From Klebsormidium nitens (lineage: Eukaryota > Plantae > Klebsormidiophyceae): a stretch of 64,000 nucleotides of DNA. Shown one piece after another: positions 2,571 to 61,450 of this stretch (the first letter of the stretch is position 1; the number at the start of each line of letters is the position of its first letter). Below the pieces are notes generated by a model that searched no databases, had not been told where the DNA came from, and saw only the letters and a list, made by a program, of their open reading frames with translations. The DNA is taken from NCBI GenBank assembly GCA_000708835.1, contig DF236965.1:124001-188000 (forward strand). The letters run 5' to 3'. The translations under genes were made by a program, and so were the position numbers.

Positions 2571-5500
2571 ATGACCAGACCACAGTCGGCATCAACCCGC
2601 AGTCAGCATCCGACTGCTTGTATTGAATGCGAAGATGAGCTTGCCACTTCTTGGTGCGAGGTTAGTCCACATCAGCTCGCTTCAAGATTTCAGAATCAGA
2701 AGCTCTTGAAAATGGGTGTTTTCGATGGATCGGAAGCAATCGAGCGTCAGCTCCCTGTGTAAGCTCCTTGCTGGTTTCCTCCTTTAATGGATGCAGATTC
2801 GGTGTGGTCTTAGGTTCTAAATCAGTGTGTGACTGGCTCGGTTTCTTGTATCATGGATCAGCCCTTCCATGCTGACCGCATCTCGCTTTTCTCCAGGAGT
2901 GTCGCACAAGCTTCTGTGAGGTGAGCCTCGACGTCTTACTTTAACTTTGTTGGCGGTGGCTAGTCCTTTTGAGGGCCTAAATTTGGTATGTGGGGGAGAT
3001 GCACGATGGGCACTGCTTGACAGTGATCGAAGATTTTATGACATGTGGCTCTCTACAACGTGAGGATCTGGTCTGCGCCGTATGCTTTGTCCAGCTTCTC
3101 CATTGCTCAAAAGATGGTGGCGCTGACTGAAAAGCTCACTTTTGGCCACCATGTTCCAGGAATGCGACCTCCATCAGCACCATCCAAAAAGCTTGCGCCG
3201 AGAGCATGTCAGGACGCCAATCAGTCCTCCGGAACCCCCGGCCGCGGCGGCATCAAGAGCCGGCTTGCTCTCAAAGGCGTTTGCGACAGAGGAAACGGCC
3301 TGGAGTGCAGAGGGTGACGAAGATTCAGCAGAGGACGGACCTGCAGATAGTGGTCTCACTTCTGCTAACCAGGGGGCTTTCAGTTCTGGTGGGAAGTTGG
3401 AGAGTGGGAGCAGCCACCATGCGCTCAAGTCGAAACGGAAGCACAAGAAGAAGCGGGGGAAAAGTAGGGGTCACTCAAAGGACAGAGTGGAGGGTGGGGG
3501 AGTTGAAGCGGAAGGGCATGAAGATGGAAGGGCTGAGCCCAGCCCTACCAAGGGGCTGGATTGTCAGGTTAGAAAGGAGAAGGACGGGGATTCCGGAGGA
3601 AGCTCATCCGTCGAGCACTTGAGGGAACGCCCGGTGAGTTGCCTGGTTCTAAGGGTCCGGCAAGCTCCAAGGAGTCTTAAGATTCTCAAATTGATTGATT
3701 AGTTATGTTGAGATTGGTGCGTCATTGAGCCTTGTTTCCCAGGTGGCTGCTACACCAGCGGGGCGCTTCACGTGAGCACAGGCGGATGTTGCTGGCATTG
3801 CAACTGTTTGTCACACTTGCAACAAGGGTATCGTGAGACGAAGATGTAGGGACTTTGGTGTTGTCATCGAGAGTAAGAGGTTCTAACTCTCTGATGATGG
3901 GCGCTTTGGTCTTCTGTCGACTTCTGCCAATTAAACATCAAGCAGCTCTTTCTCTCTCTTTCTCTCTGTATTTCAAAGACTGTGCATACCCGAAGTCGCT
4001 CGCTGGCAATGACGTGTGTTCTCAGAAGCTTGGAAGACTCCCTCACCTTAAAACTTTGTCGTCTGCCAACCCTCAGGTCTGGAAGAAGCGCAAGTCGTCC
4101 CTGAAGGGCAGCCATGAAGCGGCCGGAGAGGGGCCCCGGCAGTCTCTGCACGTGCACTGGTCGCCCGACGTCAAGGACCACAGGGCAGAGGATCACTCGC
4201 CCTCATATGGCAGCCCCCGCCGCTTCGTCCCGTTCATCAGCAACCGCCGCAAAAAGTATGCGGAAAAGCACCACAAGAAGCATCACAAGGGAGCGGCAGA
4301 GCATGCCGACAAGCGGGGCAAGGGCAAGGGGCGGAAGAGCCATGAAGCGCCAAGGTCACCAGGGTGAGTCAGAATCAAGTTTACAAGGTGGTTATAGCTT
4401 GTGGGGGTCAAGGATACAACTAGTTTGGGCCCTGTCTCATCAAGGCCGTGTGTAAACTTAGAAATCTCAGGAAAGTAGTCTTCAGGGCAGTTGGTAGAAC
4501 GTCTTTGATTGAGCATTTGAACCAGTTGACGTCAGGTTTTGCGGTGACACTCGTGTGCTTTTAGAATTTACTGTCGAGCTTGTTTAAGCATTGCTTGATA
4601 TTTCTAAATCAGGCAAGTCGCATCTTTTCTAACTATCTGGCTTCTCAAGCCTTGATATCAAACGTCTTACCCAAATTCTGTCATTTATAGTCCGTCAGGC
4701 TCTTATTGCATTACTGGTTGAGGCAGGCTGAAACCCCTCGGGGCAGTCTGTTAGTGCTGCACCTAGAAGAAGCGTATATGGTTCTCGTCTCAAGGAGCTA
4801 ACACGACACGATTGCCATGATTGCAGAGCAAAGAAGGCCCACCTGGAAAGTGCTCCCGCCACCGGCCTCAGCGACGCCTCTGAGAGCGCAGATTCGGACG
4901 CGTTTAGCCCAGTCTGGCCAAGGGACTCCAGCGACAAGTCGGAGGGCACGAGCGATGACTCCAGCTTCGAGGACAAGATGGAGCCCCGACATCGTGTTCC
5001 GGACGTCCAGCTCAAGCTGCCAGAAGCCCGAAGCGGAAGAGGGTCCGAAGTCGAGAACGAAGAGATCCCGGGGGGGTCTGGTAAGGAGCAGGGGGCTAGA
5101 ACGGGTTCGGAAGCTGGGTTGAAGATGTCGGAGGAGGTTTCGGTGCTGAAGAGGGAGGGCGCCGCGCTGAAAGCGGTGCCGTTTGGAGAGATTGTGAGCA
5201 GCAGCGGGGCGGAGGACACAGCGGAAGAATCGGCGACGGAGGACGATTCAATGGCGGGGGGGATGGATCTCGACTCGTCGGAGACCGAGATGCTGGCCGG
5301 CGGTGCCAAGGAGCAGCCCCCCGGACGCTCCTGGAAGTGGTTTGAGAGATTCATGGGGAAGAAGAAGTCGGATGCGCCGGAGAGCAAGGGGCCTGCTCAG
5401 GAGAGGGAAAAAGCTGCGCGGTCAACAAAGGGGCCTGCGAAGAAGGGCTTGGTAGACGAAAGAGGAGGGGTGGGTTCTGTTCCAGCGGTGGAGAAGAGCC

Positions 5501-7296
5501 CGTTGGGTTTGATCCGCAACTCGAATAGCAGAGCGGAGTTCGGCGCTGCACCGCAGTACAGCAGGACCGCGCCTGCAAAAGCTCCGGCGGGAGACGCTCC
5601 GAATGAATTGAGGGTGGGAAATGATTCGGGCGAACTGGAGAACGCCCGCGGTCGGATGGAGTCTGCGGCGAGGCTGGCACAGGGTGGCGACACTGTAAAA
5701 GCTGTGTGCGAGTACGAGGCTGCTATTCGCTTATTCCGGTCTCAGTATAGCGCAGCCGGTCGCCAGGCGCTGCAAGGGGAGGCGCAAGCGTGGGAAAAGA
5801 TCGCCGCCCTACAGAAACGGGAAGACAACGGCGCGGCGGCAGGACGGGGTTACTTGGCTGCCGCGCGGGTGTATCAGAGGTTGGGTATGGAGCCGGAAAT
5901 GGGGGCGTGTCTGCAGCAGGCACGTGAGCTGCAAAAGGGGGGGAGCAGTGACGAAGAAGCGGCGGAGGAGGGGCCTAAAGCACAGGCAGAGGCGACCGTC
6001 GCTAGAAAGGGAGAAAAGGATTCGAACGAAAAGCAGGGGATGCTAACAAAGAGCGCGGACGACGATTCGACGAGGGGAACACGCGAATTTGGGAACGGTA
6101 ACACTAGCGTAGAGCAGGACAAGGTGTTTCCAGCACAGGGCAGTACAGTAGCAGTGAACAGTAGCCCGCAACCTGTACAGAGCAGTAACAAGCAGGACTT
6201 AGCGCAGGGTCTAGTGTACAATAACGAGGGGGCCAAGGGGGCCAGCGGCAAGAGGGGGCCCAAGAAGAAGGGGAAGGGCGCGGCCAGTAAGGGCACATCT
6301 GAAGTCGGTGTAGCCAAGACGGCACCTGGAGAGGGGTCTGACGACAAAGTGCAGGCCGAAACGGTGCAATCGGGACCGGTAGTCATTTCAGGCACGCCGG
6401 TGAGGAGAGGAGACTCAGGCGGAAGTTTTGCGGGGAGCGGGGCCGTCGCTGCCAGCCAGGTTGACACCACTGCGTCAATCGCAAGGAGCCGCAAGTCTGG
6501 GGCGGCGGCAGTGGCGTCAGGCGACGCGGACAAAGGGAAGGCGCTTCTGGTCGGGGCGTTGGTAGCGGCTCGGAAGGGGGGCGTGAAAGCGGAGGAGGCG
6601 CGCTGCCTGCGCCTGCTGGCGGATTCCCAGGCCACCGAGGAACAGCGCGTGCGGACGCTCGAGCAGGCGGTGCAGGGGATGCGGGACTCGGGCCTGCGGC
6701 TGGAGGAGGCTGAAGCGCTGTACCGGTTGGCTGACACCAAGCTGACGCAGTACCTCGGAAACAAGGCTGCAATCCAGGCGGCGGTGTCGGGCGTGCCGGG
6801 GAAAGAAGACGTGGCGCTGGTAGAGAGCGCCCGGAAGAGCCTGCTGGCAGCCGCTCAGATCTTGCAGGTGGCTGATCTGTGGAAGGGGCCGGAAACGGTT
6901 TCGGAACGACCCGCCCGCGAGATACTGAGCCCGACGCGCACGAACCGGCCGGAGGTGGTGACTCTTCCGGCGAGAGGGAAGTTTGCCGCGAGGAACGGAA
7001 GGGGTGGGGAGAATGCGGAGAACGGTGTCACCTTTGGAACGAAGGGGGCGTCTGAAGGGGTTCCGGTCAGAGTGGGAGGCCCGGGCTTGAACGGACGGAA
7101 TGCGGATGAGGTGCGCGTTTTGAGGGAGCTGTACGGGCTGGTCTGCCAGGGTGTCGGGAAGGCTTCCATTCTGCTGGGGCAGATGGGCGCAGCAAAAGAG
7201 AACTTCCAGGAGGCGCTTTCGAACGTCGAATGGACGTCCAAGTATGGGGATGAAGCTAAAAGGGTGCGGGACATTATGGGCAGGCTTCCGCGCTGA
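2571..7296 (+). CDS. B-box zinc finger + low-complexity linker + TPR-like helical repeat protein (~1138 aa)
   Basis: Model 2571-2660, 2897-2920, 3160-3633, 4077-4363, 4755-7296; all GT-AG and in frame (3417 nt). Exons 1-3 join to CIECEDELATSWCEECRTSFCEECDLHQHHPKSLRREHVR (B-box-type C/H spacing). The last exon contains the 772-aa ORF with TPR-like helices (AVCEYEAAIRLF, VGKASILLGQMGAAKENFQEAL). The 4363/4755 junction is the least certain. Confidence 0.7.
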
Positions 7297-27396: not shown

Positions 27397-28905
27397 GAGC
27401 GAGAGCTCGGTCATCTTGCAGACTGCGTGGGATGCCTCTCCATCATGAAGACTTGCATGATGGCCGCAAGCAAGGTTTGTTTAATGGAAGGCCTGAAGTA
27501 ATTGGTATTACGTTGGACTGCTGCGATTGCTAGAGCCCGAGTGCCTGCGCGTTCCCCCTGAATTAAGTTCTCCTACCATGGTCTTCGAATCTGTGCATAC
27601 TTTGACAATCGCGCCTTGACCCGTGCCAGCTTTTCGTGTTTTCATGATGGCAGGGGTCGACGCGTAACTTGTCCTAGCTCGACGTACTGTATGGTTAGGA
27701 GCCCCCCGGCCAGCATGCGAGTTGATGATATTTTAGGAATGAAGCTCTAGCTGCCAGTTTCCAATTAACATTTGCGCGGCCATATATATGTGACTTTCAT
27801 ATGCCTACGGCTCCGGTATGTAGGCATGCTACATGAGAAGCAAGCTTTGCGGCGATGAATCGAATTGCCACACTCAATATGGGCCGCGCTCTCTTTGATC
27901 ATGCATAGTACCTAACAAAAGTTCACCATAAAAAACAATGTTTGCATGTGTAATTTGCGGATTCTGGCATCATGCGTGTATGATTGAACATATCGTATAG
28001 CCGCCTAGCTTAATATAGGCTTCACAATGAATCCATTGCATGAGCCGATGCAGGTTGATTATACCACCAAGCTCTTAAGTGAGATCTGCCCCTTTGTATT
28101 CAATCATCTGAGCCCCATCTGAGTCGATTCTTAAGGGTGCAGCTGACCCTCTGACCCGTTGGCGTGAAGCCATGAGTCTCGATCTCAGTGAGTGATTGCT
28201 GCCGCCATACCAGGTTCGGTTGCTAGGAGTCCATTTTAACATATAAGTGCCTATAATAGTAGATTGAAGTCAACTATAGAGATGCAGGTGGTGGTTAAAA
28301 TTGCGAAGACAGAGTCACTACCAGAAGGACAGCTCATACATTTTGTGTCAACAGCACATTAATTTACATCCAAACGCCAGCTAGGCCCTAGAACAGGTAG
28401 GCGCGACGGTGAGCCCTTCAGGATATTATGCGAAGAAGAACTTTCGGCGGCCCACTTCAATCGAACACTTCATGCAACTGGCGCCATTGCAGACATTCGC
28501 TTGCACAAGCTAGACTTGGTGGTGAACAACAGATCTAATGCTGCACAAGAAAACTTTATCACATGAGCTGTCCATGCGCATGGCTTTTGATTATCTATGA
28601 AACGGATTACGTTTTCTATCAAATTCTGTGATATCTATCTGTCCATTAGCGCCACTGCTCTGTATAATTCTACAGAGGACCTTGTATCATACGTATCTTA
28701 TTATACAGTATATGTATCCTCCTCTTGCTATATATATATCGTGGACCCCAACAACATATAGGTTTCAAACCAAATGCGAAGGTTTTTGTATCAAACGCAA
28801 TTGAAATCCGATCACACTTTGCTGCAAGTAACTTTGCAATCTACAGATGCAGGCTAATGGATGGTGCCACAAAAGAAGGAGCCCATATCTAAATATCCAG
28901 AGCCT

Positions 28906-31900
28906 TTACGAAGCTATGTTGCAATCCAGCTCATCGGGATAGAGGAGCCCCGCCTTCTTCGGCGCCGAAGGCATCTGCTCTTGAACCTTCTTGAGGCGCT
29001 TCTGGAGCTCTTTCATGACTGCCTCGCCTTTGGAGTCCAAAGCCAGGTCAGAGAAGTCCTTTACAAGAGAGGCACGCGGCACGTTGAGGATGTAGTTGTA
29101 GTTGAGCCACAGTTGGTAGCGGTCTTTGTCCTCACGCAAAGCGCCCTGCAAGACAACGAACACGACATGTAAGATGGTCCCCGAAAACGAAAGCTTTGTG
29201 TGATGAATGCCGTAGCATTTCCACATGTTTTTCGTTGTTTGTTGAACTCGACAGGAGCAAACTTGTTTTGTGAGTCAAGACTGACTGGTTTGTTAACAGG
29301 ACGATCGTCAAAATGGAAGCAAGCCGGGTCCATTAAAACAAATCTATCTTGATCTACATTGCACCTTCAGATGACTTTCGTGAACACTCGCAACTAGCTC
29401 TGAGAGATGGGAATCCGGCTTTGACAGCCAACACCTCTGGTGTGAATACCATCCATTAACGCTTCGCTCGAAGATGCTGAGATTGCCAGCATCGCATCAT
29501 CGACGAGTGGCGTTGGATCGTGTCTGACCTGATACACTCTGAGCGGCCACGTGGCAGTCCAGCACACATAGTTCCACATGTTCTGACCCACGGCTCCGTG
29601 CTCGCCAGTGCCCGACCATATGAAGACGGCTGCAAGCTTGGTGAGACCGCTGAGCGTAGGCGTGACCGGGTTGACCACATTTGTGACACCGCCGGGTACC
29701 AGGTTGTTGAGGAGGGTTAAGAAACGAACGATGGACGCGTCCGTGGCAACCGCCTCGTCGTCCTTGTAGTAGATAGACAGGTAATCCTTGGAGTACCTGC
29801 GTTCAAAGGGGATTGTGGCTCTTAACCATAGCCGGTTACGAGCTGGTCAAGAGTCCAGCAGACTCGAGTAGTAAGCAGGGACGTAACATGGCTGTAACAT
29901 CGGTCAAAGAACCACACTGGAACTTGGTTTACCACACCTGGTTAGCCAGACCTTCCGGTGGTTGGGTGCTGCACGGTCAAAAGCTGTGCTGGAGTCAAGG
30001 CAGAGTTTCTTCTAAATTAGGCAGATTACAGCTTCTCCGGGATTGCGTTCAATTCCTTTAAAAAGTAACATCGCTTGAAACTCATCACCATGCTGAAAGG
30101 CTTCCGGATACCATAAAGAACCTGTCAAACAGGGAGAGCACCTGCGAAAGCTAAGGAAAGACCGGTGAAGCCCAATCTGAACTTTTGTAGTGATTGTATT
30201 CAACGTGGTTTGCTCTTATACAACTGAGTGAGCGCGTGGAATAGCAGAAAAGGAGGCAAATGACGTCGTTGCCGACTGACGCTATGAGAAAGCTGTGAGC
30301 TTCAAATCTTACATGGCGATGACGCCCCACAGCTCCCGTAGATTGTTGGCAGCGGGAGAGTCGACGTCCATGCAGTAATGGCTGGGGTCCATCTCCAGCA
30401 GGTCGAACCCGTCTGTCCAGTAATCAGCTACCGCTTTGAAGATCTCCTCGCGAGGCCAGCTGAACACCGATTCAAACTGCACAGCAGAATAAACCAACAC
30501 CTTAGGCAATCGTTTCTATCTGAAAAGAGCAAGAAGGTTACCTGAAAGGTGGAGCATCCTGCATCTGATCTCGAGATGTGTTTGAGAATTTTGAAATTGT
30601 GAAAAATCTCTTGAGAAGGGACTGCGAACCCTCTGACACTATCTTATTTGTGTCAGACTCACGAGATGTCGACCTAGATAGGCATACCGAAAGACATACC
30701 GAAGTGGTTGTGGCAATCTTCTCAAACGACCTCTAAGTTGGTCTGGAGCTGAGCGTGAAAACCGAGAAGCAAGGATCCTCATTACTACAAAAGCAAGGGC
30801 GCTCAAGCAGGAGCTAGCTAGCTATAGCAAGGAACCGTCCAGATGGAGTGAATTGTGAGTTGCATAGCTGCTTCAGCACAACCGCAGCATGAGACCAAGC
30901 CTTTCTGGGAATTGTGCTTGCTTCGGAAGATCAAGATGTCAGGATGAGGACTTCACCCTTCGTTCGTTAAGAGGCAACTTCGGGCTCGCTCACCGTCGAA
31001 TTGAAAAAGCCCCCCTGGAGGTCAGTCCTGATGGTCTGTGCGTTGCTCCGGATTGCCCCAAAGAAGTGGGCCCACAGCAGCCGAAGCAGGGGGTGGGAGC
31101 CGCTCAGCGTGTTCCGGGCCGCGATCTAAAGGAAGAGCACGTCGTCAAAGACCGAGGTAAGAGCCGGCTTGATTACTCACAGCCGAGTTTGTCGCACGCG
31201 CATCTAGTCACGAGGAGGGCTGCTTTGAGCCCAAAACACGTGTATACATCTGGATAAAGATATCGACTTTCTGCCCAACGATTTGCAGAAACAGACCAGC
31301 CAAGATGGGCTTTTGCATTTGACCATCAGCAATAACGTCAGCGTTCTGGTCCATTGACTCTCTGATTTCGAAGTTTTTACAGTCCGTCCTTTGGAAGGAG
31401 CTACTCGTGAGTACATCCCACAATGGCCTACCGTGGGCATGCGATCACAGCGGCTCCCAGCCGTTCACCTTGTAGCATGCCTCTCTCGATCTGAAATCTA
31501 TCATCTGCACTGTGGCAGCTTTGCCAAGCACTACTATGCACAGTGCCTGCTAGCTGACTGGTGACACAGCCGCTTTCACATCACTGGGTTGTCCTTCACA
31601 ATATTCAGAGCTTCATTGCTTAGTATCTGACCTCACATTCTCTTACAAGATTTGTAAAAGGAGGCTTCTGTAGATTCTGTAGGCTTCGTTGAAGGAGAAG
31701 CCTTCAGCGCTATGCACGTTGAGAAGGTAGCGGCCAACACCTCTGGCACCATAAAATGTAGGCCGCTTTAAGGTCTGGTTTAAGGCTTCCGGATGCAATA
31801 TTTCCAATCAAAGCGACCTCAAAGTTCTCCCCAAGATCAAGATGACCTGAAATGTTGCATCTTTAAGATCACCACTGACCTTTAAACCCGACCTTTAATC

Positions 31901-34391
31901 GCCTATACGTTTCTAGTATTTGGAGCTAAGCAGAGGTCGCCAATCGTACCTCAAAGCACTCCGCCATGGCCACGTGCACTCCCATCGTGTGGTGTAGAAT
32001 GCTGTTATAAGTGGCAGCGCTGGCCAAGAAAATCTGTTTGGCCAGTGCAAAGCGTTCGGGGTCGTCTGAAGGGCTGACAGCTCCTGTCTCGCCCGTGGTT
32101 ATGCTGGTTACCTGAAGAAGAGCAGCAAAGCATGATATACTGTAGCGTTGGCAGTTGTCGCCAACATTTTGCATTACATGTATGCCTTCATCCGATTTGG
32201 GAAAGAGGCGCCTTCTGTGGCAAGCAATGTGTCGTAGCAGCATGTACTGTTAGGGGAACCATCCGCAAGAAAACGGCTAGGATTGTCAGAAATTGCAAGA
32301 AGAGAAGCAGATTTTCACATCGCCTCAAGAACCACTGATATTATGATCAATACCTATCAATAGGTATTCTTGACAGGTGAGGATAGGCTGGGCTGTCCGT
32401 GAAGAAACATATCCACAAAATACTCGTGTCCCTCGCCTCCTGCCGGAATTAAGTGCAAAACCAGACTCTGAGCCTGTTCATCAGGACCTGAACGGACACT
32501 CTGTCCACTCTGAAAGTTGAACATCGGCAATTGGAGACGTCCATGGAATCTTTGTCACCTAAATTTTTCAGAAGGGGTCAGTCAGCGATCGAAGAATTCC
32601 CTCCAGTTGCTAAACAGAGTTCCCCAAGGCACCACTCAATTGAAAACTTAGAGACTGCTTGGATCCAGTTTGCTCCCGCCGGGCCCTTTCAAAAAGAGCT
32701 AGGTCTGGCTCTATGGTCGACATTTGATTTGCAAAGAAGCAGGGTTTGGTCTGACAAAGCCAACGTCTAGGTTCAGCAGACAAAGGTGATCTAAGCAGTT
32801 CTTTCAAAATGTCTGGAAAGCTTCAGCTTGTGCGTACCTGCCACACAGCGTTTAGCTCAGCTTTGGCCCCCAGTCTGTGCAGGCCCGGATAGACTTTGTA
32901 CTTTGCGAGCTTCGAGAGATCAATGATGTACCCTCCCTGGGTTGGCCCTTGCTGAGACTTTGCTTGGGTGTACCGAAGCAAGGGGCCATTGCGGGCCAGC
33001 TCTCCGATGTCAGCTCTGCCCTTTGCCATACCCTGTATTCAGAAAGGCAACCCCTATGACAACCTGCCAGATCAAAATCTCCTCGTGCATTTCAACCACG
33101 GTGCTGCACAAACTGCAATTCAATCGCTGTATCTACAAGAAACAAGATCTAGGCATTCAAGGTGACAAGCTGGCAGCCAGTCCGTGCACAGAGAAAGAAT
33201 GTAGTGAGGAGAGGCTACCTTTGTTGGTTGCTTACCGGAGGGCGCACAGGAGCTTGGAAAGACTTCTGGAGGTTTGCAAATGGGACCTTGGTGAATGCGT
33301 CTTGGACCATCTCGTCCTCTTGCAAAGTGAAAAGAGACAAAGTAAGGGAGCGCCCTTCCATCAAAATGTGCTCAACCATTCAACTTTTCCACAATGAAGC
33401 GCAGCAACCAGAAATCCTGGAAAGTTGCAGAGAAAGAAATTGCAACACAGGCTAGTCCCTCCAGTGAGTGTGTTTATAGAATTGATTGCCTTCTTCCATG
33501 GAAGATCTAGCCCCCATTCCAGGGTCCCAGCAAAAGCGCGTGTATTCCACCAGTGGTGAAATTGGATCATCACTTGAGCAGACTTACAAAAAGAAAGAAG
33601 ATGCCAGCTGAATCTCACCATCATTCACAACAGGTCCGCCGGTTCTTGAGTCGCCTGTTGCCAATGGGAAGATCCACATGAGCACCCACTGAACCAACGT
33701 AACAATCTGCAGAAAGTTGACGATTTGAGCTGAGAAGTAGAGAGGTGTTCATACAACTGTAAAACCTAACCAACCTCAAAGTTACCTTCATACGGGAACA
33801 CCCAATCAGAAGATAAGGTCTTGGAATGCTTCTTAAGAAGTTGACTGACGTGTGAGAGCTATTGCTCCGTGAAGAAGAGGTATCCGCACCAAACTTCAGG
33901 TCAGGGCTCCTTGGGAAGGCTGATCTTGTCCTGAGCAGTTTCATTGATTGGTCCCAGTGCCGGGGCACAATCCAGATGTTGCAGATCTCCAGGTCATTTA
34001 GCGTACAGGAAACAGCAGATGTTTGACTCCCATGTGTATCCAACAAAGATTACACAGGGCTGAGACAAAACAAGACTTGCTATCAAAGTAACCTGCCAAA
34101 AGTGGAGCACTGTATTACCTGAACAAGCCACTGATAGAGAATTGCCTCATCTTTTGGTACCGTTTCAGCCTGCACGACCAGCTTCGAAGTCGATCCGGTG
34201 CCTGGATCAACTGTTGGCAGGTAATGCGGCAGGAAGGACTTCACCCCCAGCTTATCCGTCTTGCAGGTTTTCAATAGGTTGTTGTTGGGAATGGGAAGCG
34301 GGGAGCGCTGGTTCCTGTCCATCTTTGTCTTTGCGAATGCTGTCCAAAAGATGCGCCGCAGACTGCAGCTAGTTTCTGATGGAGGCGCCAT
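28906..34391 (-). CDS. Lipoxygenase-family protein, compact and lacking a PLAT domain (~502 aa)
   Basis: Nine in-frame exons: 34391-34119, 33706-33619, 33318-33236, 32936-32838, 32111-31950, 31125-30994, 30476-30313, 29796-29529, 29145-28906. LOX motifs: VPKDE, FALAK, HHTMGVH (H-x4-H), IAARNTL-HPLLRLLWAHF, IYYKDDEAVATD, FIWSGTGEHGAV, C-terminus LLYPDELDCNIAS*. The start codon choice is tentative. Confidence 0.88.
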
Positions 34392-36309
34392 CTTCCAGTG
34401 GGAAATGCTCCTACCTTTCCTCAATCAGGAATGTCGAGTTTGAGACAATGCTATCAGACAAGGCCGAGCTGGGGGAGAAAGGAAATCTCCTTCGAATGTT
34501 TGAGGCAGCCAACTCTCTGGTGGTCCCAACACATATATACTTTTCTTTCTTGAAGAAGGGCGACGTAGCGGGGAAGCCATGGACCTGATTGCTGCAACAA
34601 AATGAATGTACGAGGACTGGTGCAGCAAATGCATTATTCACGTGATGGTATGTACTACCGAATTCCGCTGGAAAATATTCTGGGCGGTAATGGACCGATA
34701 ATGGTTCTATTTAGCTGGTAACGCTAGGGCTGCCGAAAGTCGCAAACGTTTCATAATTAATTATTTGGCGTCGAACCTGACGAAATCAAACGCTGGTACG
34801 GTATGCTGAGTGCTGCATTTAATGACCGTTAGCTTTCAAGGATGCATGATTGCCCTTCAATCATGAATATTCTTCGAATCTTTCCGTACTGGTTTGACTT
34901 TACGCGAAGTTCTCAGGCTCTGCGATTCCGCCTCATGCGCAGGCGTCCGGACTCCGACTCCGGACTCCGGCGAAGTACAAAGACGGAATCTTCCGCTTTT
35001 ACTCCGTCCGATTTGAAGGTCCGACTACACCGGAAGGGGTGTCCGCTGGGACTGACGGTACTAGTTCATCGGACGGTCTCGAACGGTTCGCCTTCAATAG
35101 GGTCCAGAATACCTATTCTACTAGTCCAGCTAATAGTATCCTTGCTTTCTTGCTTGGAGATAACTTTCGCCCAATGATGCAATGAATGCGCTGTTGCCTG
35201 CAATATCGCACGGTTCAAGGGTACGTTTGATTTCACTTCGAAGCTTCTCTAGTCCGTAACTGGCAATAGGTTACTTAGCTGAGCCGGAATGAAGAAAATT
35301 AAAACATTACTCCAAGCACAGATTTGCACTTGGTAGCTTTCTAGTCACACGGACAGATATACACCGAAAGGAACGAAGAGATGTGTAACAGCAGCCAAGA
35401 AGCGGCGTCAAGCAACAAGTGGTGAAGTGGCGCCAAAAAGAACGGACGAGAGATGGCTGCAAGGCTCGCATCGCGAGACTCACGTTCCAGTCTGTAGTTT
35501 GCATCACTCGGAACGCTGCGGGTACTAACCATCTCTGATCACATCTTTGTGACGCTTCCAAGTTCAGGTATAATCTCATCAACGCGAAGGCTCTGAGAGA
35601 GCATAAGAGCACCAAAGGCTTACTTGATGGCTGATTAGGATATAACGTGCATGATGTTTGATGTCAGCCTCAGTGCCTGGGGTATCCAGTTTTAAAGATA
35701 TGGATGCCTCTCTACTTTGGTCGCTCGTTTGACATTTGTCAAGCAAGCTGCAGCGAGCTCTCGACCGTTGTCCAAGTTGTCACTAGAAGGACTCAGCAGC
35801 CCTACTTTAGCTGTAGTGATTAGGGACACGTTTCCATATGAATCAGACGAATGGGCTTCAAAATGAACTGGTTGAACTGGTCCAGCTGCGAACAGAGGGC
35901 GGCCGCTAGTTTGTCATCTGGTCGCCAGACTAGGGCGCTCTCTTGTAGAACTTAGAGCTTCTTCCTTGACCAGATTGATAGCTTATCTTGAATGAAGACG
36001 CTGTTTCTAATCCATTGGTGTAAGCAATTCCCGCCTCGAGAGATTGCTGATGTAAAGTGCTTAGTGCATTCGAGAAGAGTGGCGCTAACTTGTGAAAGCA
36101 ACCGTCCAGGACGTGGCTCCACCTCAAATGGGGACGCCCTTAGACCTTTCACTGGACACGTGTCTGTTCCCGAAAAGTTTCTTCCACAAAAGGCGAAGCA
36201 GCTCACAACCGCGCAGGCAAGCCCAAGCCCTCTGAAAGGCCGGTCGATTTTATCTCGCGGCGGTGCTGCGCGTTACTCGTGGCCCGCGGAGCGCGCCGCG
36301 GTGGGGCAG

Positions 36310-51342: not shown

Positions 51343-54300
51343 ATGCCTGGCATGGCCGGCAGCTTACAGCAACCCCAGATCCTGGAGCACACCAGCAAAA
51401 GCTTGTCCGTGACGATCTACGATACAAAATGGGTACCCAGCAGGTATGCACCAGCCACACCCAGTCTGCACACTACCTGCTGTTTGATAGCCCTATATTG
51501 GAAAATCCGTGACCAACTCATCGTCACCAACTCTGACGATGCCCATCGACGAGATTTGAGCTAGTGCATACCACCTTCAGGGATTACTATGTTCTCTTTT
51601 GCTTTATCTAGGTTTGAGTCTCACAAAGAGAGCTCACGGGTGATCAATGCTCACACAAGATTTTTCAAAAGGGGAACATCTGTGAGCAGGTGGTAGCTCT
51701 AATGTTCATCATCTTCCTTACTGATATTGTGCAGCGCTCGCTTTGTGGTCCTCGGCTCCCACCCTAGAAACAGCGGCTGTATCCAGGTGTACGAACTGGG
51801 GGGAACGGAGATCAACAAACTCACAGAGGTCAGCCTTCAAAATAAAGATCAAGTTTTTTGCTGCACCTGCAAGTAGCTATGAGCTAGCTACTTATAGATT
51901 CTGGTTCCAGGAACATCAATAAAGCCAGTTTCCTTTATGCCACCATGTGAATATTGCATCATGAAGCAGGAACTGAGGAAGTCTGCTAGTGCAAGCAAGG
52001 CTGATTCTTTTTGCGTTTTGCCTTTCTGCATAACGTCCTTTGCTGCTGCCAGCTAAACTGAGGCCAAGCCTGAATTTTATAGCAGAACTGTTAATCGAAG
52101 TCAGCTTTGGGCCCTCAAAGTCAATGCAACAGAGAGAACTTTATCACTAGAACAGGGGAAGAATGAAGTACTTTCGCACACATGCGTTCCTTGTTGACAG
52201 GCCCCCAGTGTCACTTTCTACTTATAGAAGCTTGTTCCGCAGGCGGAAAAGCAGCACAGCTTCAAATGTGGGACATTTGGCGCCTCAAGCCTGGTAAGGC
52301 AGCATTCTTCCTTCATTTTGAAAGTCGATTTCTGGAACAGATTGTCGCCCTCAACCCCAGTTAGTGCTTCCCCTCCTCAGTGTTCCAGGCTGCACCTCAT
52401 AGCTGCCTTGGGGTTGTACACCTATTGCACAAGTCATTCCCAATCGATCGCCTTGCCCCAGTGAGCCCCAGCAAGCATCAATCTGGTTGTCAGCCTACTT
52501 CATGAGCAACAACCTAGTCTTGTCCTTCCTTCGTAAGAGAGCTTGACATCCACTATCTCCAACACTCCCAACTGCTGACATGCTCTTCTGTCAGCGCAGA
52601 CCCAACGCCACCTCGCCACCGGTGACTTCGACGGTAACCTCAACGTTTGGGACCTCGACAGGCTAGGGACCCCTCTCTACCACGCAAAAGCCCACAGCTC
52701 AATAGTAAACGCAATCGACGGCTGCGGAGGCCTAGGGGTCGGGCGGGGAGCCCCCGAGATCGTGACATGTGGCAGGGACGGCCGGGTCTGCGTATGGGAC
52801 ACCCGACAAAAGGACGACCCTGTGGCGTGCTTCGAGCCTGCCACGTCGGACAGCACGCGCGACTGCTGGGCCGTCTCGTTCGGAAACGCGTACGAGGAGA
52901 ACGAGCGGTGCGTTCTCGCGGGGTACGACAACGGCGACGTGAAGCTGTTCGACCTGCGCACGGGCACCGTGCGGTACGAGACGACGCTGCAGAACGGGGT
53001 GTGCGCGGTGGATTTCGACCGGAAGGACATCCCGATGAACAAGTTCGCGGCCACGACGCTCGAGTCGCGGTTCCACGTGTTTGACGCGCGCACGCAGCAT
53101 GCAACAAAGGGGATGGCGAGTTTGAGCGAGAAGCAGGCGCATGGGAGCACGATCTGGGGGGTGCGCCACCTGCCTCAAAACAGGGAGGTGTTCATGACGC
53201 TAGGGGGAGACGGCAGCTTGGCGTTGTACAAGTATTCGTACCCCGAGAAGAGGACGGCCAAGGAGGAGGACGGGAGCGTGTCGGGGGTGAGTGCGAGACG
53301 CCCTGATTTTAAATCGTTCTTATATCTAAGTAGTGGGTGGAAAGAAGGCGATTAGAGTCGATTTTGCTCGCACAAATGGTCGAGGTTTTGATCACCGGAA
53401 GGAGGAAAGCGAGAGCGTCACGTGAGACTTCACTCTTTGTGCACGCAAACGAGCACTGGCTACTACTGGATGGAGAGTCGTTTGAGGGGCCTTGTGAAAG
53501 CGATTTTGACGGCTAAAGTGTGGTCCCGTTCTTCCTTTCCGGGATGATTTGGACGCTCATCTCAGCAGCTCCCATTGCTGTCAGGCAACTTGCGGAGTCG
53601 AGATGCCGGCTGTCGACCTCTTAACCCCGTCAGCAATGTCCATATTCAAATGTGTAGCCTGACCCAAAACGGCAAACCTCAGAGAGATGAGGCGCTGGAC
53701 ATGATTGGAAAGCTGTTGACCCGTTGAAGAAGCATGTGGTCCACTGTTTTCAGCAAAGGATCAGGGGCTAAAGAACGGTATCTCCGGAAACCTCGCTTGG
53801 CCCGGTTCAGTGGGAAGGCATTCTTGTTTCTCTGAGGAAACCCCCGGATCTAGATTTCGGCCCCTGTCCATGCAGGTCATTGGAAGCGTAAACATGTTAG
53901 CGTCGCGAACGGTGGCCTCTCAACCAATCTCCTGCTTTGACTGGTGAGTTACTCCGCTGATGTGCGCCATTTCATGGTTCTGGATTGTTTCGCTCTTTTC
54001 AAGTGCGATTTGATATTCTGGATCTCCTGGAGTTAGGAGGTAGATCTGAAGAAGGGAAAGGTAAAATGAGCGCAAGAATTTGACGCAAGAGCGACCTGAA
54101 GCAAGGGACCTCCGATCAAACATTCATGCGTTTACTTATGAGCTTCGTGTACAATGTGAAACCGTGGTTCTGCTCTTGGCAACCGCATCCAACTTGCAGC
54201 AAATCGGAACCGTTTAGGACTGGCTCCTGCATGATTTGTATATCCCCTGCCCGTAGCTTCTTTTGCGGCACGTGGTGCATCTCCACCGTTTATAATTGCT

Positions 54301-56826: not shown

Positions 56827-59800
56827 TTATTCTACCTCCGCCTGCAACGCAAGCCCCTCTTCCTCCTCTTTCAGGGCCTCTTTCTCGTTCTCGCGCTTCT
56901 TGATGCTCGCGTCATCGACCCGGAGCGCGAGTCGGGCGGCCTCGTAGCACATGCAGCTGACTGCGGCGGCGGGGATGAGCTTGACGCACGTGGTGCCAAG
57001 GCCGCGATAGAGCGCTAAGAAACCCTCTTCTTTGTAGATGGTCTGGACGACGTCGAGGGCGTTTTTGTACACAGCTTTCCCTCCCACCGTGCCTAGTTGC
57101 ATCTGGCGGCGTGCCACCTGGAAGTCCAACGGGGCTTGTGAGACGATTTCATCAAACTGAATCATCAAGTGCACGTATAGGAGTCTGTGCTTGAGTTGAC
57201 CGAATATTCGTGCAAATTAGTCTGTGCTTGACCTAGAAAGAGAGGCGCTGAATCCGTGGTTAAAAGCATGGCTGTAAAATAGTCAATAAAAGCACGAAAA
57301 ACCAAGAATTAACCAGACAGCTCGCCATTTACAGCACTCAAAGGATTCTGTACACTTATTACCCGCAGCCACAAAAGGTCGAACACCGACACGCGCAAAG
57401 TACGGCAATGCCGAGCACTGTTCAACGACACGAGGAACACAAGTCACTCAATCCCGATTCAAATCCATGCAACTCGGTGAATCACCCTGATCAGGGCTGG
57501 CAAGGGTGACCACTCTTCTCAACCCAAACACCTCCCCACAAAGGTTGCATCATTGTTCTGGGCAAGCTGACATTTCAACCATTCAAGAGTTGGTTAGTTC
57601 AACGGCAACATTTTTCTCATTCCAACTAGTTTGCGAAGGAATGTGAGGCCGAAGGGGCTGCAGTGCCATGAAGCAGCGTACACAGCGTCAGCAATACGCC
57701 CTTATTACCTTCCGTTCGCCTCAAAAACCTCCCGCAAAAGGCTGCCCTCATCCTTCAGAGCTACTCAACAGTTCTTACAAACATTACTTCATATCAGCTA
57801 CCTTACGCAGCTCTCCTTTTCTACTCACCTCCAGAGGGAACGTGAGGGCGCTCGAACACGACGCAGCGGCAGCCCCAAATAGCAGCGTAGGCACCGTCGG
57901 CACATAGTCCTTCTTTGTGACCCGCTTATAGGCGGATCGAAGGCCAGCATAGACGCCGTAGTTTGCGGCAGCGTATGGAAACACCCCCAGAACGCTAGGC
58001 CGTAAACCGCTGTACAGAGCGCCGGCGCCCTCCTCCGCAACAATCTTGTGGAACGTGCGGCTGATGCTCGTATACAAGTGCGGCTGCGAGGGAACAAAGA
58101 GGATGACCATTTTGACATGGGCACAGCGCTTTCTCCAACAAGCACAGCACCTTTTCTTAGAAAAGGGCGTTCCTGAATGAAGTCCAGTCTGATCAAGAAG
58201 AGCCGATTTGCCTTCTACCTTATCAGAACCCTGTGTTCCATCCACTTTTGACTGGAACATTGTCTGAACCACCACCCCAGTTTCAGTCTTGCTGTCGAGC
58301 TCCAGACCGGTTCTAAGGGTGCCGCTATGTTTACATCCGAGATGCATACAATGCATCTTGCAAATTGACTCTCAAGGATCACGCCGATCCGTTAGATGGT
58401 ATTTAGGAACTATCTGAACCAGACTATCCAATCTGCAAACAGTACTTTACACAAATTTCCGTTCTCCATTTGGCATCAGTTTATTTAGGAGGACACTGCC
58501 CGCGGTGAATATGCTTGACTCACCTGCACCATCATTCTGGTCCTCATCAACTCCAGGGGATAGGTCGCAACTGTTGACCTGGAAAAAAAAACTTTGCTTG
58601 TGAAACTACTCCAAAGTGCATAGGCTGTGCAATGCAGCAATTGCAGAAGTAACATGGAACCTCAAGTACGAGCCTGCTATACATTTTGAGACGCCTGCCA
58701 ATGTGAACAAGAAAATCCAACCGCATCCAGCTACTTGTACAGCATTTGGTGGGCCAAAGTCATATTAGATTGGTTTCTGCAAACCGTAGAAGCGGAGAAA
58801 GGTGTCAGGTACCATCCAGAGAATGTGCAGGAAAGTGCAACCGGCAAATACTCACATCATGCCTGCTGCTCCTCCCGCTACAGGTGCGGCGACGAAAGAC
58901 ATCAAACTGCCTTCATCTTTCGACAGCGCGCGCTTGAGGTTTTCAAAGACACACAGCTCGATGGCCTTGCACGGCGCCACCCGCAGACAATTAATGCCGT
59001 TCCCTGCAGATAAATGCAAGGGTGTTGAATAATTTCGGAGAGACCACTCATTGCACGTGGTTCTTGGATGGGATCCAGAGTGCGAGCTACACCCACGCAT
59101 CAGAAAGAGCTCCTTTCCATACTGCTTGCAGCCGCACAGAACTTTCGCCTCTGTTGTTGCTGAGCATGATGAAGAGAGCAAATATTAGAAAGTCTCTGAC
59201 GCCATGAAGATCATAAGCATTTCAGATGGACGTAAAGAATGGAGCAGTCCGCGTGCGTTACATTCATAAAAGCGGGCAAACTACGCTTGCGCAAGGTGGG
59301 ATGGCGCCTTCTTTGAGCAATGTACCAACTATAGCAACTTTTATTGTTGCGAGGGTCCTCAAATGCCTCAAACAATGTCAGAAGTTTGTCGATTTGACAG
59401 ACATGGTCAAATGTGCCAAGAACCACCAAAATAAACGCCAGACTACAAAATGAACCTCATTGAGATGACACATGGGAGCCCATACTGGAGCTAGATGCAC
59501 AACGTGCCAGTAAGAGCGGTGCTCACCTCGAAAGAACGCTTTCCACCCCCCCTCCTCGAAAATCTTTGCGGCCACCACGGCAGCAGTCTTGGGAGCCCCC
59601 CGGCTCCCATGCCCCGTTACTAGGTGCGTCTTTATAAGGTCCAGTGGGGCCACAAATGAGCGCGAGACCACGCCTGCAAACGCCCCGCTTGCTAGTTGCT
59701 GCAGCAGCCCGGATCTCTTGCCCAGCTTCTCAAGCCGCTTTGCTATTTGCGCCTGCCGCTCCACCCTCTTGAAATGCCACTTTCTGTGCATGTGCTTCTG

Positions 59801-60466
59801 TCTGCTGGGCCCAGCCTCAGTCTCCTGCCCGCTACTGCTCACAGCTTCCTGCTCTGAGGTGGTCTCCTGGGACTTTTGCGGCCGAGACGGTGTCAACTGG
59901 TACCACTGGACGTCCGGGCCTTTGGACAACTCATCCTCAAACACGAAGTCGGCTCGATGCCACGTCCTCTGCCCATCCAGAACACCAACAACGCCCTCGC
60001 CAAATGCTGCGTGACTTAAGCTAAGAGTAGCCACCGTCGAGCGGGGTCGCTCCTCGGGCGAGCTGGCAACCCTAGACAATGTGACGTCTCGCAATGCTGA
60101 CCGGCTTCCCCCAGTAGAATCTTCCATGACAACGGTTTGCCTCCGCTTTCTTTCAGTGACCACCTTACCCCTTTTATTGCTACTCTCAGGTTCCACGGGT
60201 CTTGCTTTCGACTGCGCAGGCCCTGCAACCTTCCTCGACCCCGCGCTCTGCGTTCGCTGAAGCGCCTTGGCGAGGCTGCTGCTTGAATGCTTGCTCAGGA
60301 AGTGCTTCGGCAGCCCTGTGGTAAAAATGGACGCGCTGTCCGTCAGCCGTGCGAATGGCAGTCCAAGCGGCCCTGAGGACTCCAAGGTTTCACCCGCTAT
60401 CTTTGTCAAACTCGTGGCAGCTTCTCGCAGCGTGCCCAGCGGCTGTGACTCCTGGGCACTTATCAT
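56827..60466 (-). CDS. Mitochondrial carrier family protein, Brittle-1 (BT1)-like adenine nucleotide transporter with a long N-terminal extension
   Basis: Exons 60466-59527, 59003-58856, 58578-58524, 58083-57829, 57117-56827 are in phase. Three carrier signatures (APLDLIKT, YPLELMRTR, FPLEVARR) plus GNGINCLRVAPCKAIEL, typical of the BT1 group. The true start may lie upstream of 60466. Confidence 0.88.
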
Positions 60467-61450
60467 GGCTGTCTCCTCTATACTGACAAACAACCGTAAC
60501 ACAGGCGAGAGCTGGCCAGAAAATGTGACGGCCGCTTTCTCGCCCCAGTACCAGCCTCCTGAGCTGCTTCCCTGCACACCTAGGTCCTAGAGGCGCCTCT
60601 GCAAACAGGCAGAGCTCAGCACAAGGGCGACAGAGCAACCTTCTTCACCAAACCAAATCGCACTGCTCAGCGTCAGGTCTCTGTAGACTGTACCAACTTC
60701 CAAGTCTCCGCAGAGCAGTGCAGACTCAGACTGCACAGTGCAGTGGCGTGGCTTGCTTCCTCGCCTCGAAAGTTTGACAAGAGGATTTGGTCCAAGGTTC
60801 GCCTGCGCCACAGGAGCAAATTTGAGCCACAAACGAGCATCAAAAATCTGCAGAAAACACGTGTACGGCGTGTGGATTATCTGAAATCGCGATTCAGGGT
60901 GATGTACGGACCGTGGATGGCGGTATTCTGACGGTGGGTACCGCGGCGTGCACGCTAGCCCACTCCTGTGGCTTGTGCACAATGCATAGGTACCAGGTAC
61001 CTGGTACCGCTTGCCGCCGACCGGATGGTCATCATGGCATTCGGCCGGATTGGGATGCTTCGCCTCTAACTTTTAGGGAAGCCCTGCTCTCTCTACTAGC
61101 TGAGTGCATGCAGCCATGCTCTTAGGTAGCATCCGATCGCCGTGCACATTGAGTTGTACATCGAAGTTCGCTCCTTGCAACCGCGACTGACAGGCTGTTC
61201 AAATGGTGTTTGCCACCCGGAAGCAATAGCTTTGAAATGTAAGTGCGTTGGACAAATCAGCCAATCAGCGACGTACCACCACACGAGTAACCTCCGCACC
61301 TGGTACCCCTTTCCTCGGCAGCCATGACCGTCTGCATATAACCTGCTAGCCTGATCGTACTTTTGGTAAATCATGATGCAGCCGCCAGATCGAACTCGTC
61401 GAAAGAATGCTCTGGCTAATCATATTTGGATAACGAGAAGTGCATGCCAT

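Follow-up and report, generated by a model that had tools for sequence, protein, structure and literature searches.

Lipoxygenases (LOXs) are generally identified by a set of five metal ligands, among them the C-terminal carboxylate, which normally belongs to Ile and in some enzymes to Val, while the residue at the Coffa-Brash position gates the access of O2. In surveys of bacteria, LOXs have been rare. The plant-type enzymes consist of a PLAT domain and a catalytic domain and measure about 850-900 aa. A smaller form is CspLOX2 of Cyanothece sp. PCC 8801 (5med, 5mee, 5mef and 5meg), a PLAT-less 'mini-LOX' of 569 aa that carries an N-terminal helical extension where the β-barrel would be. A simplified metal site has been obtained by engineering in the soybean LOX-1 variant N694G (1y4k), a PLAT-containing enzyme of 839 aa with Gly at the fifth-ligand position, three His, the carboxylate of a C-terminal Ile, and Ala at the Coffa-Brash position. 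eLOX3 has a LOX fold and mainly transforms hydroperoxides, which is attributed to limited access of O2 at the Coffa-Brash site or close to it (PMC13319228). Finally, a dioxygenase and its hydroperoxide-converting companion can be co-encoded or fused, as in the coral AOS-LOX fusion (3dy5), the fungal DOX-CYP fusions, and the Nostoc 10S-DOX with its catalase-related lyase (PMC13049297).

Here we describe a protein of the alga Klebsormidium nitens (P0069; "lipoxygenase family protein [Klebsormidium nitens]" at NCBI) that, judging by its sequence and its modelled structure, is a 534-aa PLAT-less protein with a LOX catalytic fold. Its gene occupies the minus strand of the window, the whole 64-kb stretch of DNA analysed, with the coding sequence at 28906-34391. 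Spliced RNA contigs from four studies gave nine exons and eight introns, all of them GT..AG, and the spliced coding sequence is identical to P0069. The features are as follows:

34392-34606, minus strand: 5' UTR of exon 1; RNA contigs from three studies end at 34603, 34606 and 34607, and an in-frame TGA lies at 34427-34425.
34119-34391, minus strand: coding part of exon 1, from M1 onward; encodes the N-terminal helix kept in the bacterial kin.
33619-33706, minus strand: exon 2, 88 nt; apparently absent from the earlier model of about 502 aa; joints 33706/34119 and 33318/33619 seen in four runs.
33236-33318, minus strand: exon 3, 83 nt; apparently absent from that earlier model as well; RNA contigs, GT..AG introns.
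32838-33032, minus strand: exon 4; RNA contigs, GT..AG introns.
31950-32111, minus strand: exon 5, with N249, H254 and H259 (the H-x4-H metal ligands); RNA contigs and alignments.
30994-31125, minus strand: exon 6, with the H278-P279 motif, N295 and T298 (Coffa-Brash position); RNA contigs, Pfam and alignments.
30313-30476, minus strand: exon 7; RNA contigs, GT..AG introns.
29529-29796, minus strand: exon 8, with H432 (third His ligand) and G436 (Asn/His-ligand position); RNA contigs, Pfam and alignments.
28906-29145, minus strand: coding part of exon 9, from P525 to S534, with the stop codon at 28906-28908; RNA contigs and alignments.
28519-28905, minus strand: 3' UTR, end approximate; RNA contig X13 runs 181 nt past 28700.

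The length of about 502 aa given in the initial annotation did not hold: the two small exons at 33619-33706 and 33236-33318 had been left out, and the RNA gives 534 aa. The RNA did bear out that the gene is spliced, with transcripts ending near 34606, and that it is expressed and intact, with an open 534-aa frame and spliced contigs from four studies. Thus, this is an expressed, correctly spliced nuclear gene, and its spliced transcripts were abundant in all four studies. In other public runs we also observed a related partial copy with frameshifts of -1 and -10 nt. The gene has a GC3 of 0.69, its neighbours are mitochondrial-carrier and WD40 genes, and Rfam and tRNA scans of the 64-kb window returned no matches. 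The nearest relatives of the protein are bacterial, as would be expected if the gene were bacterial contamination or an assembly artefact. However, eight spliceosomal introns are removed in the RNA, the contig measures 401,725 bp and carries eukaryotic genes on both flanks, and an orthologue is present in a second Klebsormidium species. We therefore give contamination or artefact practically no chance, and consider it ruled out by the RNA splicing, the GT..AG introns and the eukaryotic flanking genes.

Membership in the LOX fold was supported at the level of both sequence and predicted structure. Against the Pfam Lipoxygenase profile (PF00305), which the initial annotation had proposed as a check, P0069 scored 56.9 bits, above the cut-off of 23.6; single exons matched it weakly (HGAVG exon, E 3.9e-5; SNAQTIR exon, E 0.068). 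A family profile matched solved LOXs in the PDB with E-values down to 5e-33, and CspLOX2 was the best single-sequence PDB match of P0069 (E 2.3e-10; VIA Z 26.6). The AF2 model of P0069 (pLDDT 84.6, pTM 0.89) found LOXs as its only Foldseek matches. In VIA, it aligned with h12-LOX at Z 28.9 and an rmsd of 3.1 Å over 440 residues, which is the mostly helical LOX catalytic fold; the 132 chains at Z >= 8 appear to be LOXs, and the best 50 of the 132 all are. No NCBIfam model covers the LOX-like family to which P0069 belongs. Matches to PGIP (E about 0.9), together with multi-stretch matches to long repeat proteins, were spurious and stem from a leucine-rich part of exon 8.

We conclude that the protein has no PLAT domain, because an in-frame stop (the TGA 12 codons 5' of the ATG) lies upstream, the transcript ends at about 34606, and no β-barrel appears in the predicted fold. 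This agrees with the PLAT-less reading given earlier from the DNA. Pfam found no PLAT match (PF01477) in P0069, and in animal and plant LOXs the VIA alignments begin past the PLAT domain. The protein thus differs from plant-type LOXs in missing the β-barrel, and resembles CspLOX2 in its size and in having an N-terminal helical extension in that place.

The metal site had been described as keeping three His and departing from the canonical residues elsewhere, and alignment to solved LOXs upheld each of these assignments. The three His ligands have their aligned counterparts in H254 (31991-31989), H259 (31976-31974) and H432 (29600-29598). Four residues past the third His, in the HGAVG motif, G436 (29588-29586) aligns to the Asn/His ligand, so that the fifth ligand of the usual set is not found there. 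The last residue, S534, stands nine residues past a conserved Pro, with the spacing seen in h12-LOX; it is co-linear with the canonical Ile, and residue 534 of the AF2 model superposes on the C-terminal Ile of solved LOXs in VIA. N249 replaces the His that is found five residues ahead of the first ligand. The Coffa-Brash position is T298, at N+3 from the conserved Asn N295. Profile alignments placed it there, in agreement with soybean LOX-1 numbering when a count from H499/H504 brings L546 and I553 into register; both ruled out an ungapped reading that put the site at the GG of 'LQGGFF'. The corresponding residue is Gly in 11R-LOX (3vf1) and Ala in h12S-LOX and CspLOX2.

In CspLOX2, the three His ligands and the INxxAR Asn align with those of P0069, but the enzyme has the canonical Asn ligand where P0069 has G436 and Ala where P0069 has T298, and the two are only 16-17% identical. 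The soybean N694G entry scored highest of the soybean entries against P0069 and shares with it the Gly, the three His and a C-terminal carboxylate, in P0069 a putative ligand. Its Gly was engineered, however, whereas that of P0069 is natural and clade-wide.

By sequence comparison, the K. nitens protein belongs to a distinct, otherwise bacterial clade of LOX-like proteins of about 500-540 aa. A profile search of genome contigs, for which the bacterial-subset alignment served as query (P0069 as a single-protein query matched none), found relatives encoded in at least 158 species genomes, all bacterial. The hosts are soil and freshwater bacteria and include mycobacteria, Pseudonocardia, Burkholderiales, Acidobacteriota, Nitrospirota and myxobacteria. 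In the ESM Atlas, too, the nearest clusters were bacterial, with a match to an actinobacterial cluster at TM 0.83/0.88. P0069 shows the hallmarks of the clade: a length of about 500-540 aa, the N-terminal W..R..FW...KF helix, H-x4-H, H-x3-G, and a short C-terminal N-x-x-x end. None of the three His varies among the 94 bacterial members and the two Klebsormidium proteins (96 in all), and the Asn-ligand position is Gly in every one of these sequences; the bacterial C-terminus is usually Ala and the bacterial Coffa-Brash residue usually Val. The initial annotation had proposed a divergent LOX class with an altered metal site. The site is indeed non-canonical, but it is not peculiar to the K. nitens gene, given the Gly in 94 of 94 bacterial members. 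We found no description of this bacterial Gly-site clade in a literature search that covered few subscription papers, and the clade is large and apparently uncharacterised.

A second property of the bacterial relatives concerns their genomic partners. An An_peroxidase gene, encoding an α-dioxygenase-type haem dioxygenase, adjoins the LOX-like gene in 80 of 86 bacterial loci, and in P0003, P0010, P0046 and P0050 the two are fused. The haem partner matches plant α-dioxygenase structures (E 7e-105), and its VYR[LM]H Tyr/His motif is present at 73 of the 86 loci. The bacterial kin thus share the logic of the two-enzyme oxylipin modules, with an α-dioxygenase-type haem protein as the second component, whereas the Klebsormidium LOX-like half stands alone: no coding sequence for a peroxidase-like or haem dioxygenase partner was found within the 64-kb window. 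The same literature search, with few subscription papers covered, found no report of a haem α-DOX-like protein paired with a non-haem LOX-like one. The analysis points to a widespread bacterial clade in which Gly always replaces one ligand and which is nearly always tied to an α-dioxygenase-type haem enzyme. A single characterised pair would define a new bacterial route of fatty-acid oxidation and would test what degree of simplification the LOX metal site tolerates.

Klebsormidium was the only eukaryote in which we saw a member of the clade. When HMMER was run exhaustively against 1.84 billion representatives, only three matches were obtained at E <= 1e-10: the K. subtile orthologue, a Klebsormidium-like fragment and a fusion of bacterial type. 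Fragment clusters of eukaryotic origin, from Haptophyta and Streptophyta, also appeared in the ESM Atlas with low scores; they are leads only. Because the kin are bacterial and the gene has eight introns, horizontal acquisition from bacteria followed by intron gain is most likely the most economical history, with the transfer deduced from distribution only; a bacterium would have passed the gene, but not the haem partner, to the Klebsormidium lineage, where the eight introns were then gained. In the tree, the Klebsormidium pair branches as the sister group of the bacterial α-DOX-linked clade rather than within it, so that neither the donor nor the direction is given by the tree. The horizontal origin followed by intronisation proposed earlier is therefore backed by the bacterial kin and the introns, but not by the position of the algal pair. 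That sister position would also suit an ancient LOX-like gene that eukaryotes inherited vertically and lost in almost every lineage, as would the fragment clusters if these leads were borne out. We consider such a history quite unlikely, since it needs very many independent losses, no other full-length eukaryotic member was found among the 1.84 billion representatives, and all 158 typed genomes are bacterial. Under horizontal acquisition, the algal copy would be a candidate for a gene that an early-diverging streptophyte lineage of land surfaces obtained from bacteria, and it lies outside the jasmonate-type LOX family usually counted in streptophyte genomes.

The sequence evidence suggests that the protein most likely came from bacteria and works as a metal enzyme in oxylipin chemistry. 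In our model, a redox metal, most likely Fe, would be held by the three His and the S534 carboxylate, with solvent at the position that Gly leaves vacant, as in the engineered soybean variant N694G. The substrates would be polyunsaturated fatty acids or their hydroperoxides. As a whole, a bacterially derived PLAT-less LOX-fold metal enzyme with a Gly-opened site and a lean towards hydroperoxide conversion is probably the best explanation. We tentatively favour a hydroperoxide-converting 'companion' activity, of the isomerase or lyase type, over plain dioxygenation, because the residue at the Coffa-Brash site is bulkier than Ala or Gly (Thr in K. nitens, Val in most kin) and because the bacterial relatives are paired or fused with a haem dioxygenase. 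In Mn-LOX, a larger residue at this site promotes hydroperoxide isomerase activity, and eLOX3 is an isomerase (PMC13319228). eLOX3 is thus a possible functional analogue, but its metal site is canonical and it includes a PLAT domain, so that the parallel concerns mechanism alone. An altered metal or hydroperoxide-isomerase chemistry, as the initial annotation had suggested, is plausible in view of the bulky Coffa-Brash residue and the haem dioxygenase partners in bacteria.

The Gly alone is no argument for new chemistry, because soybean N694G is reportedly still a dioxygenase, with reduced activity. One could instead envisage a small conventional LOX that dioxygenates 18:2 and 18:3, with water replacing the Asn ligand and the odd residues tuning only rate and regio- and stereochemistry. 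The three His and the co-linear C-terminus are kept, the soybean variant was stable enough for crystals (1y4k), active PLAT-less LOXs such as CspLOX2 exist, and linoleate is abundant in the lipids of K. nitens (PMC13364333). An argument against this reading is that the bacterial kin are almost always paired with a haem dioxygenase, which suggests instead a two-step pathway. In addition, the Val or Thr at the Coffa-Brash site is larger than the residue of any characterised dioxygenating LOX known to us, and many of the bacterial hosts, such as mycobacteria and Pseudonocardia, are not known to make bis-allylic polyunsaturated fatty acids. We regard the conventional LOX as a serious contender that is nonetheless doubtful.

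The favoured hydroperoxide-converting activity can be extended to a broader proposal, which we offer as possible but rather unlikely. The clade would then be a new functional class of the LOX fold, with four protein ligands (three His and the terminal carboxylate) and an obligatory Gly that keeps one coordination position open. It would have evolved in bacteria as a companion of α-dioxygenase-type haem enzymes, either converting hydroperoxides or engaged in mutual activation. Klebsormidium would have taken the non-haem half into an algal oxylipin pathway fed by the hydroperoxides that its LOX or α-DOX enzymes make.

Finally, we considered how far the algal protein has diverged from its relatives. 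Its branch is very long (2.27 substitutions per site), and of 68 columns conserved at >=95% in bacteria, K. nitens keeps 45 and has changed 23. These features, and the frameshifted partial copy, could point to a catalytically dead or decaying LOX-fold protein, either a pseudoenzyme or a gene nearing loss. In contrast, the reading frame is intact in two species, the K. subtile orthologue being 89% identical with all ligands kept, abundant spliced transcripts came from four studies, and most of the altered columns show conservative replacements, for instance L/I and W/F. Loss of function is thus very unlikely, and we retain the functional metal enzyme as the preferred reading. Two of the changes deserve mention: after the third His, both Klebsormidium proteins have G433 where 91 of 94 bacterial members have E/D, and the penultimate residue is A533 in both, against Asn in >=95% of bacterial members. 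Together with the long branch, these changes could reflect a changed or relaxed function in K. nitens.

Taken singly, the exon-bearing ORF fragments of the minus-strand lipoxygenase (LOX)-like gene matched the Pfam Lipoxygenase family weakly when translated (the EHGAVG fragment at E 3.9e-5, the SNAQTIR fragment at E 0.068). Evidence for splicing came from public run contigs of four different studies, aligned over 28700-34650. The contigs of all four share the same eight joints, each CT..AC on the plus strand and thus a GT..AG intron on the minus strand. Spliced contigs are 2173-2207 nt long, with 5' ends at 34603-34607 and 3' ends about 180 nt past 28700; intron sequence was present at low depth only. 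The nine-exon mRNA contains a single long ORF of 534 codons that begins with an ATG at 34391 and stops at 28908-28906; 12 codons 5' of this ATG there is an in-frame TGA. Thus, a spliced gene at 28906-34391 stands as initially annotated; the earlier product of about 502 residues was too short because two small exons had been omitted:

33619-33706, minus strand, small exon from RNA contigs
33236-33318, minus strand, small exon from RNA contigs

The translation is identical to P0069, the NCBI "lipoxygenase family protein [Klebsormidium nitens]", whose residue numbers we use. Since it was already auto-annotated as a LOX-family protein, the gene itself is not a new discovery.

We rejected bacterial contamination as the source of the locus. 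The gene sits on a 401,725-bp contig, its CDS has a GC3 of 0.69 and its introns a GC of 0.47, and other ORFs of the window encode mitochondrial-carrier and WD40 domains, all of which indicates a normal nuclear context:

57784-60577 (minus strand) and 52762-53355 (plus strand), ORF fragments of ordinary eukaryotic genes, encoding mitochondrial-carrier domains and WD40 β-propeller repeats

Elsewhere in the window, an uninterrupted 772-aa ORF (4978-7296, plus strand), unusual for the intron-rich K. nitens genome, had no Pfam match; the stretch around it has a raised GC (0.58) and a strong positive GC skew (0.18-0.21).

P0069 scored 56.9 bits against Pfam PF00305 (cut-off 23.6). A phmmer search of PDB chains returned LOXs down to E<=0.26, and just three weaker rows, by chance, at E 0.57-0.93. 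The top match was the PLAT-less CspLOX2 of Cyanothece (E 2.3e-10), and the top-scoring soybean entry was the engineered N694G enzyme (1y4k). A 29-sequence family profile reached E 5e-33 (11R-LOX, 3vf1), and an AF2 model built on the same family alignment (pLDDT 84.6, pTM 0.89) retrieved LOXs alone among its best 50 Foldseek matches in the PDB. With VIA-align, the model superposed on human 12-LOX with a Z of 28.9 and an rmsd of 3.1 Å over 440 residues. The protein lacks a PLAT domain: Pfam found none in P0069, and the VIA alignments, which cover model residues 33-534, begin past the PLAT domain of the target LOXs. In these alignments residue 534 falls on the targets' final residue (663, 673, 685 or 839).

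Alignment to solved LOXs placed every residue where the initial annotation had put it. H254 and H259 align to the H-x4-H ligands, H432 to the third His ligand and G436 to the Asn ligand, while N249 takes the place of the His located five residues ahead of the first ligand. N295 corresponds to the INxxAR motif's conserved Asn, and T298 is, by alignment and by counting soybean LOX numbering, assigned to the Coffa-Brash position; at this N+3 site the R-specific 11R-LOX has Gly, and both 12S-LOX and CspLOX2 have Ala. The tail is co-linear with canonical LOXs: here (P525 to S534), as in human 12-LOX, nine residues follow a conserved Pro up to the C-terminus.

Exon 8 was searched exhaustively with HMMER against 1.84 billion representatives, which yielded 68 matches. 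Only P0001, a fragment of 130 aa and a fusion protein of 1231 aa scored E<=1e-10. P0001, a 532-aa protein of Klebsormidium subtile (EukProt), is 87% identical across exon 8 and 89% identical to P0069 over the full length, with all ligand positions the same. The other full-length matches were proteins of 485-580 aa, aligned at the same relative place, or of >900 aa, aligned C-terminally. When one genome for each prokaryotic species was scanned with a degenerate pattern, 158 species proved to encode relatives, among them Actinomycetota (including Mycobacterium, Mycolicibacterium, Pseudonocardia and Geodermatophilus), Burkholderiales, Acidobacteriota, Rokubacteria, Nitrospirota, Myxococcota, Bacteroidota and Verrucomicrobiota. 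In the ESM Atlas, too, the closest clusters come from bacteria, with a TM of 0.83/0.88 to an actinobacterial cluster of 501 aa.

Residues at key positions in 94 bacterial members and two algal proteins
H254, H259, H432: bacterial His 94/94; K. nitens His; K. subtile His
Position 436 (Asn-ligand site): bacterial Gly 94/94; K. nitens Gly; K. subtile Gly
Position 534 (C-terminal): bacterial Ala 82, Gly 8, others 4; K. nitens Ser; K. subtile Ser
Position 298 (Coffa-Brash): bacterial Val 75, Ala 7, Gly 5, Thr 3, others 4; K. nitens Thr; K. subtile Ser

Because the three His and the Gly occur in all 94 bacterial members, the non-canonical ligands are hallmarks of the clade under strong constraint, neither a lineage-specific oddity nor decay. 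The initial interpretation is supported in part: the gene is expressed and spliced, its product has the LOX catalytic fold, and Gly occupies the fifth site throughout the clade. K. nitens retains 45 of the 68 columns that are >=95% conserved in bacteria, and most substitutions are conservative. Both algal species share two that are non-conservative: Gly replaces the acidic residue following the third His (E/D in 91/94 bacterial members), and Ala replaces the penultimate Asn of the bacterial kin. The leucine-rich stretch of exon 8 (29640-29760, residues ~385-425) gave multi-stretch matches to long repeat proteins and borderline matches to PGIP LRR proteins; we set homology aside here, as the likeness is probably compositional.

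A maximum-likelihood tree built from 72 rows united the two Klebsormidium proteins as a clade with 100% support; its stem is very long, at 2.27 substitutions per site. This clade is sister to a 64-row bacterial clade linked to fatty-acid α-dioxygenase (α-DOX; 98% support), outside rather than nested within it. Because the relatives span many bacterial phyla and one algal genus, the distribution favours transfer from bacteria followed by the gain of eight introns, as initially suggested; from the tree itself neither the donor nor the direction can be read, and long branches may have affected it. What is new here, as far as we checked, is that the Klebsormidium gene is recognised as the one eukaryotic branch seen so far from a large bacterial clade that is uncharacterised and whose metal site is simplified.

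Within this bacterial clade, an α-dioxygenase partner is near-obligate. An An_peroxidase gene directly adjoins the LOX-like gene in 80 of 86 loci, its start or end usually a few bases away, as in this example:

L081:6001-9834, two-gene module of a LOX-like gene and an α-DOX-type haem dioxygenase

Adjacent α-DOX-like genes also accompany it in the culturable Pseudonocardia acaciae DSM 45401 (L003) and Mycolicibacterium vulneris DSM 45247 (L037). The two are fused in P0003, P0010, P0046 and P0050, and in P0003 they are joined by a long, hydrophobic, TM-like linker. Against plant fatty-acid α-dioxygenase structures the partner reaches E 7e-105, and in 73/86 loci it carries VYR[LM]H, which we take to be the catalytic Tyr and proximal His, as in α-DOX and COX. 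P0031 (1076 aa, NCBI), which has no An_peroxidase, carries an N-terminal DyP-type peroxidase domain fused to the LOX-like domain, a second kind of haem partner. The 64-kb K. nitens window holds no peroxidase-like sequence. In their design, the bacterial pairs match coral AOS-LOX, fungal DOX-CYP fusions and the Nostoc 10S-DOX with its lyase, each of which joins a fatty-acid dioxygenase to a hydroperoxide-handling companion (PMC13049297). In the literature searched we found no description of an α-DOX-type haem enzyme paired with a LOX-like protein, and neither peroxidases nor mycobacteria figure in a 2026 review on LOXs of bacteria (PMC13319228).

Our model suggests that a metal, probably Fe, is bound by the three His and the S534 carboxylate, and that, as in the soybean N694G enzyme, solvent would fill the place that Gly leaves free. 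In Mn-LOX, a bulkier residue at the Coffa site restricts O2 access and favours hydroperoxide isomerase activity; eLOX3 acts as an isomerase (PMC13319228). Because the clade has Val or Thr at this O2-gating site and is coupled to a haem dioxygenase expected to produce hydroperoxides, we lean, tentatively, towards a hydroperoxide-converting role for the K. nitens protein. Ordinary dioxygenation is a somewhat doubtful but real possibility; linoleate is abundant in K. nitens (PMC13364333), so either substrate class is available. That the protein has no catalysis, or another function, we consider unlikely.

Two smaller observations concern relatives. At L084-L086, the bacterial loci of the P0019 subgroup, a gene for a 912-aa GAF-HisKA-HATPase-receiver hybrid kinase lies 3' of the LOX-like gene with an 8-nt overlap, which may mean that the pathway product is sensed or acts as a regulator. 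Logan contigs from SRR14092358-60 (L087:1618-2583, L088 and L089) hold a related genomic copy whose alignment with K. nitens is confined to exon 8 from its acceptor onward, intron 8 and exon 9 (75% nucleotide identity, 1007 nt). Its exon 9 is 86% identical in amino acids and ends in LDCNLAS, and deletions of 1 nt and 10 nt in exon 8 break the frame right after the third His. This copy appears to be truncated or decaying and to come from a relative.
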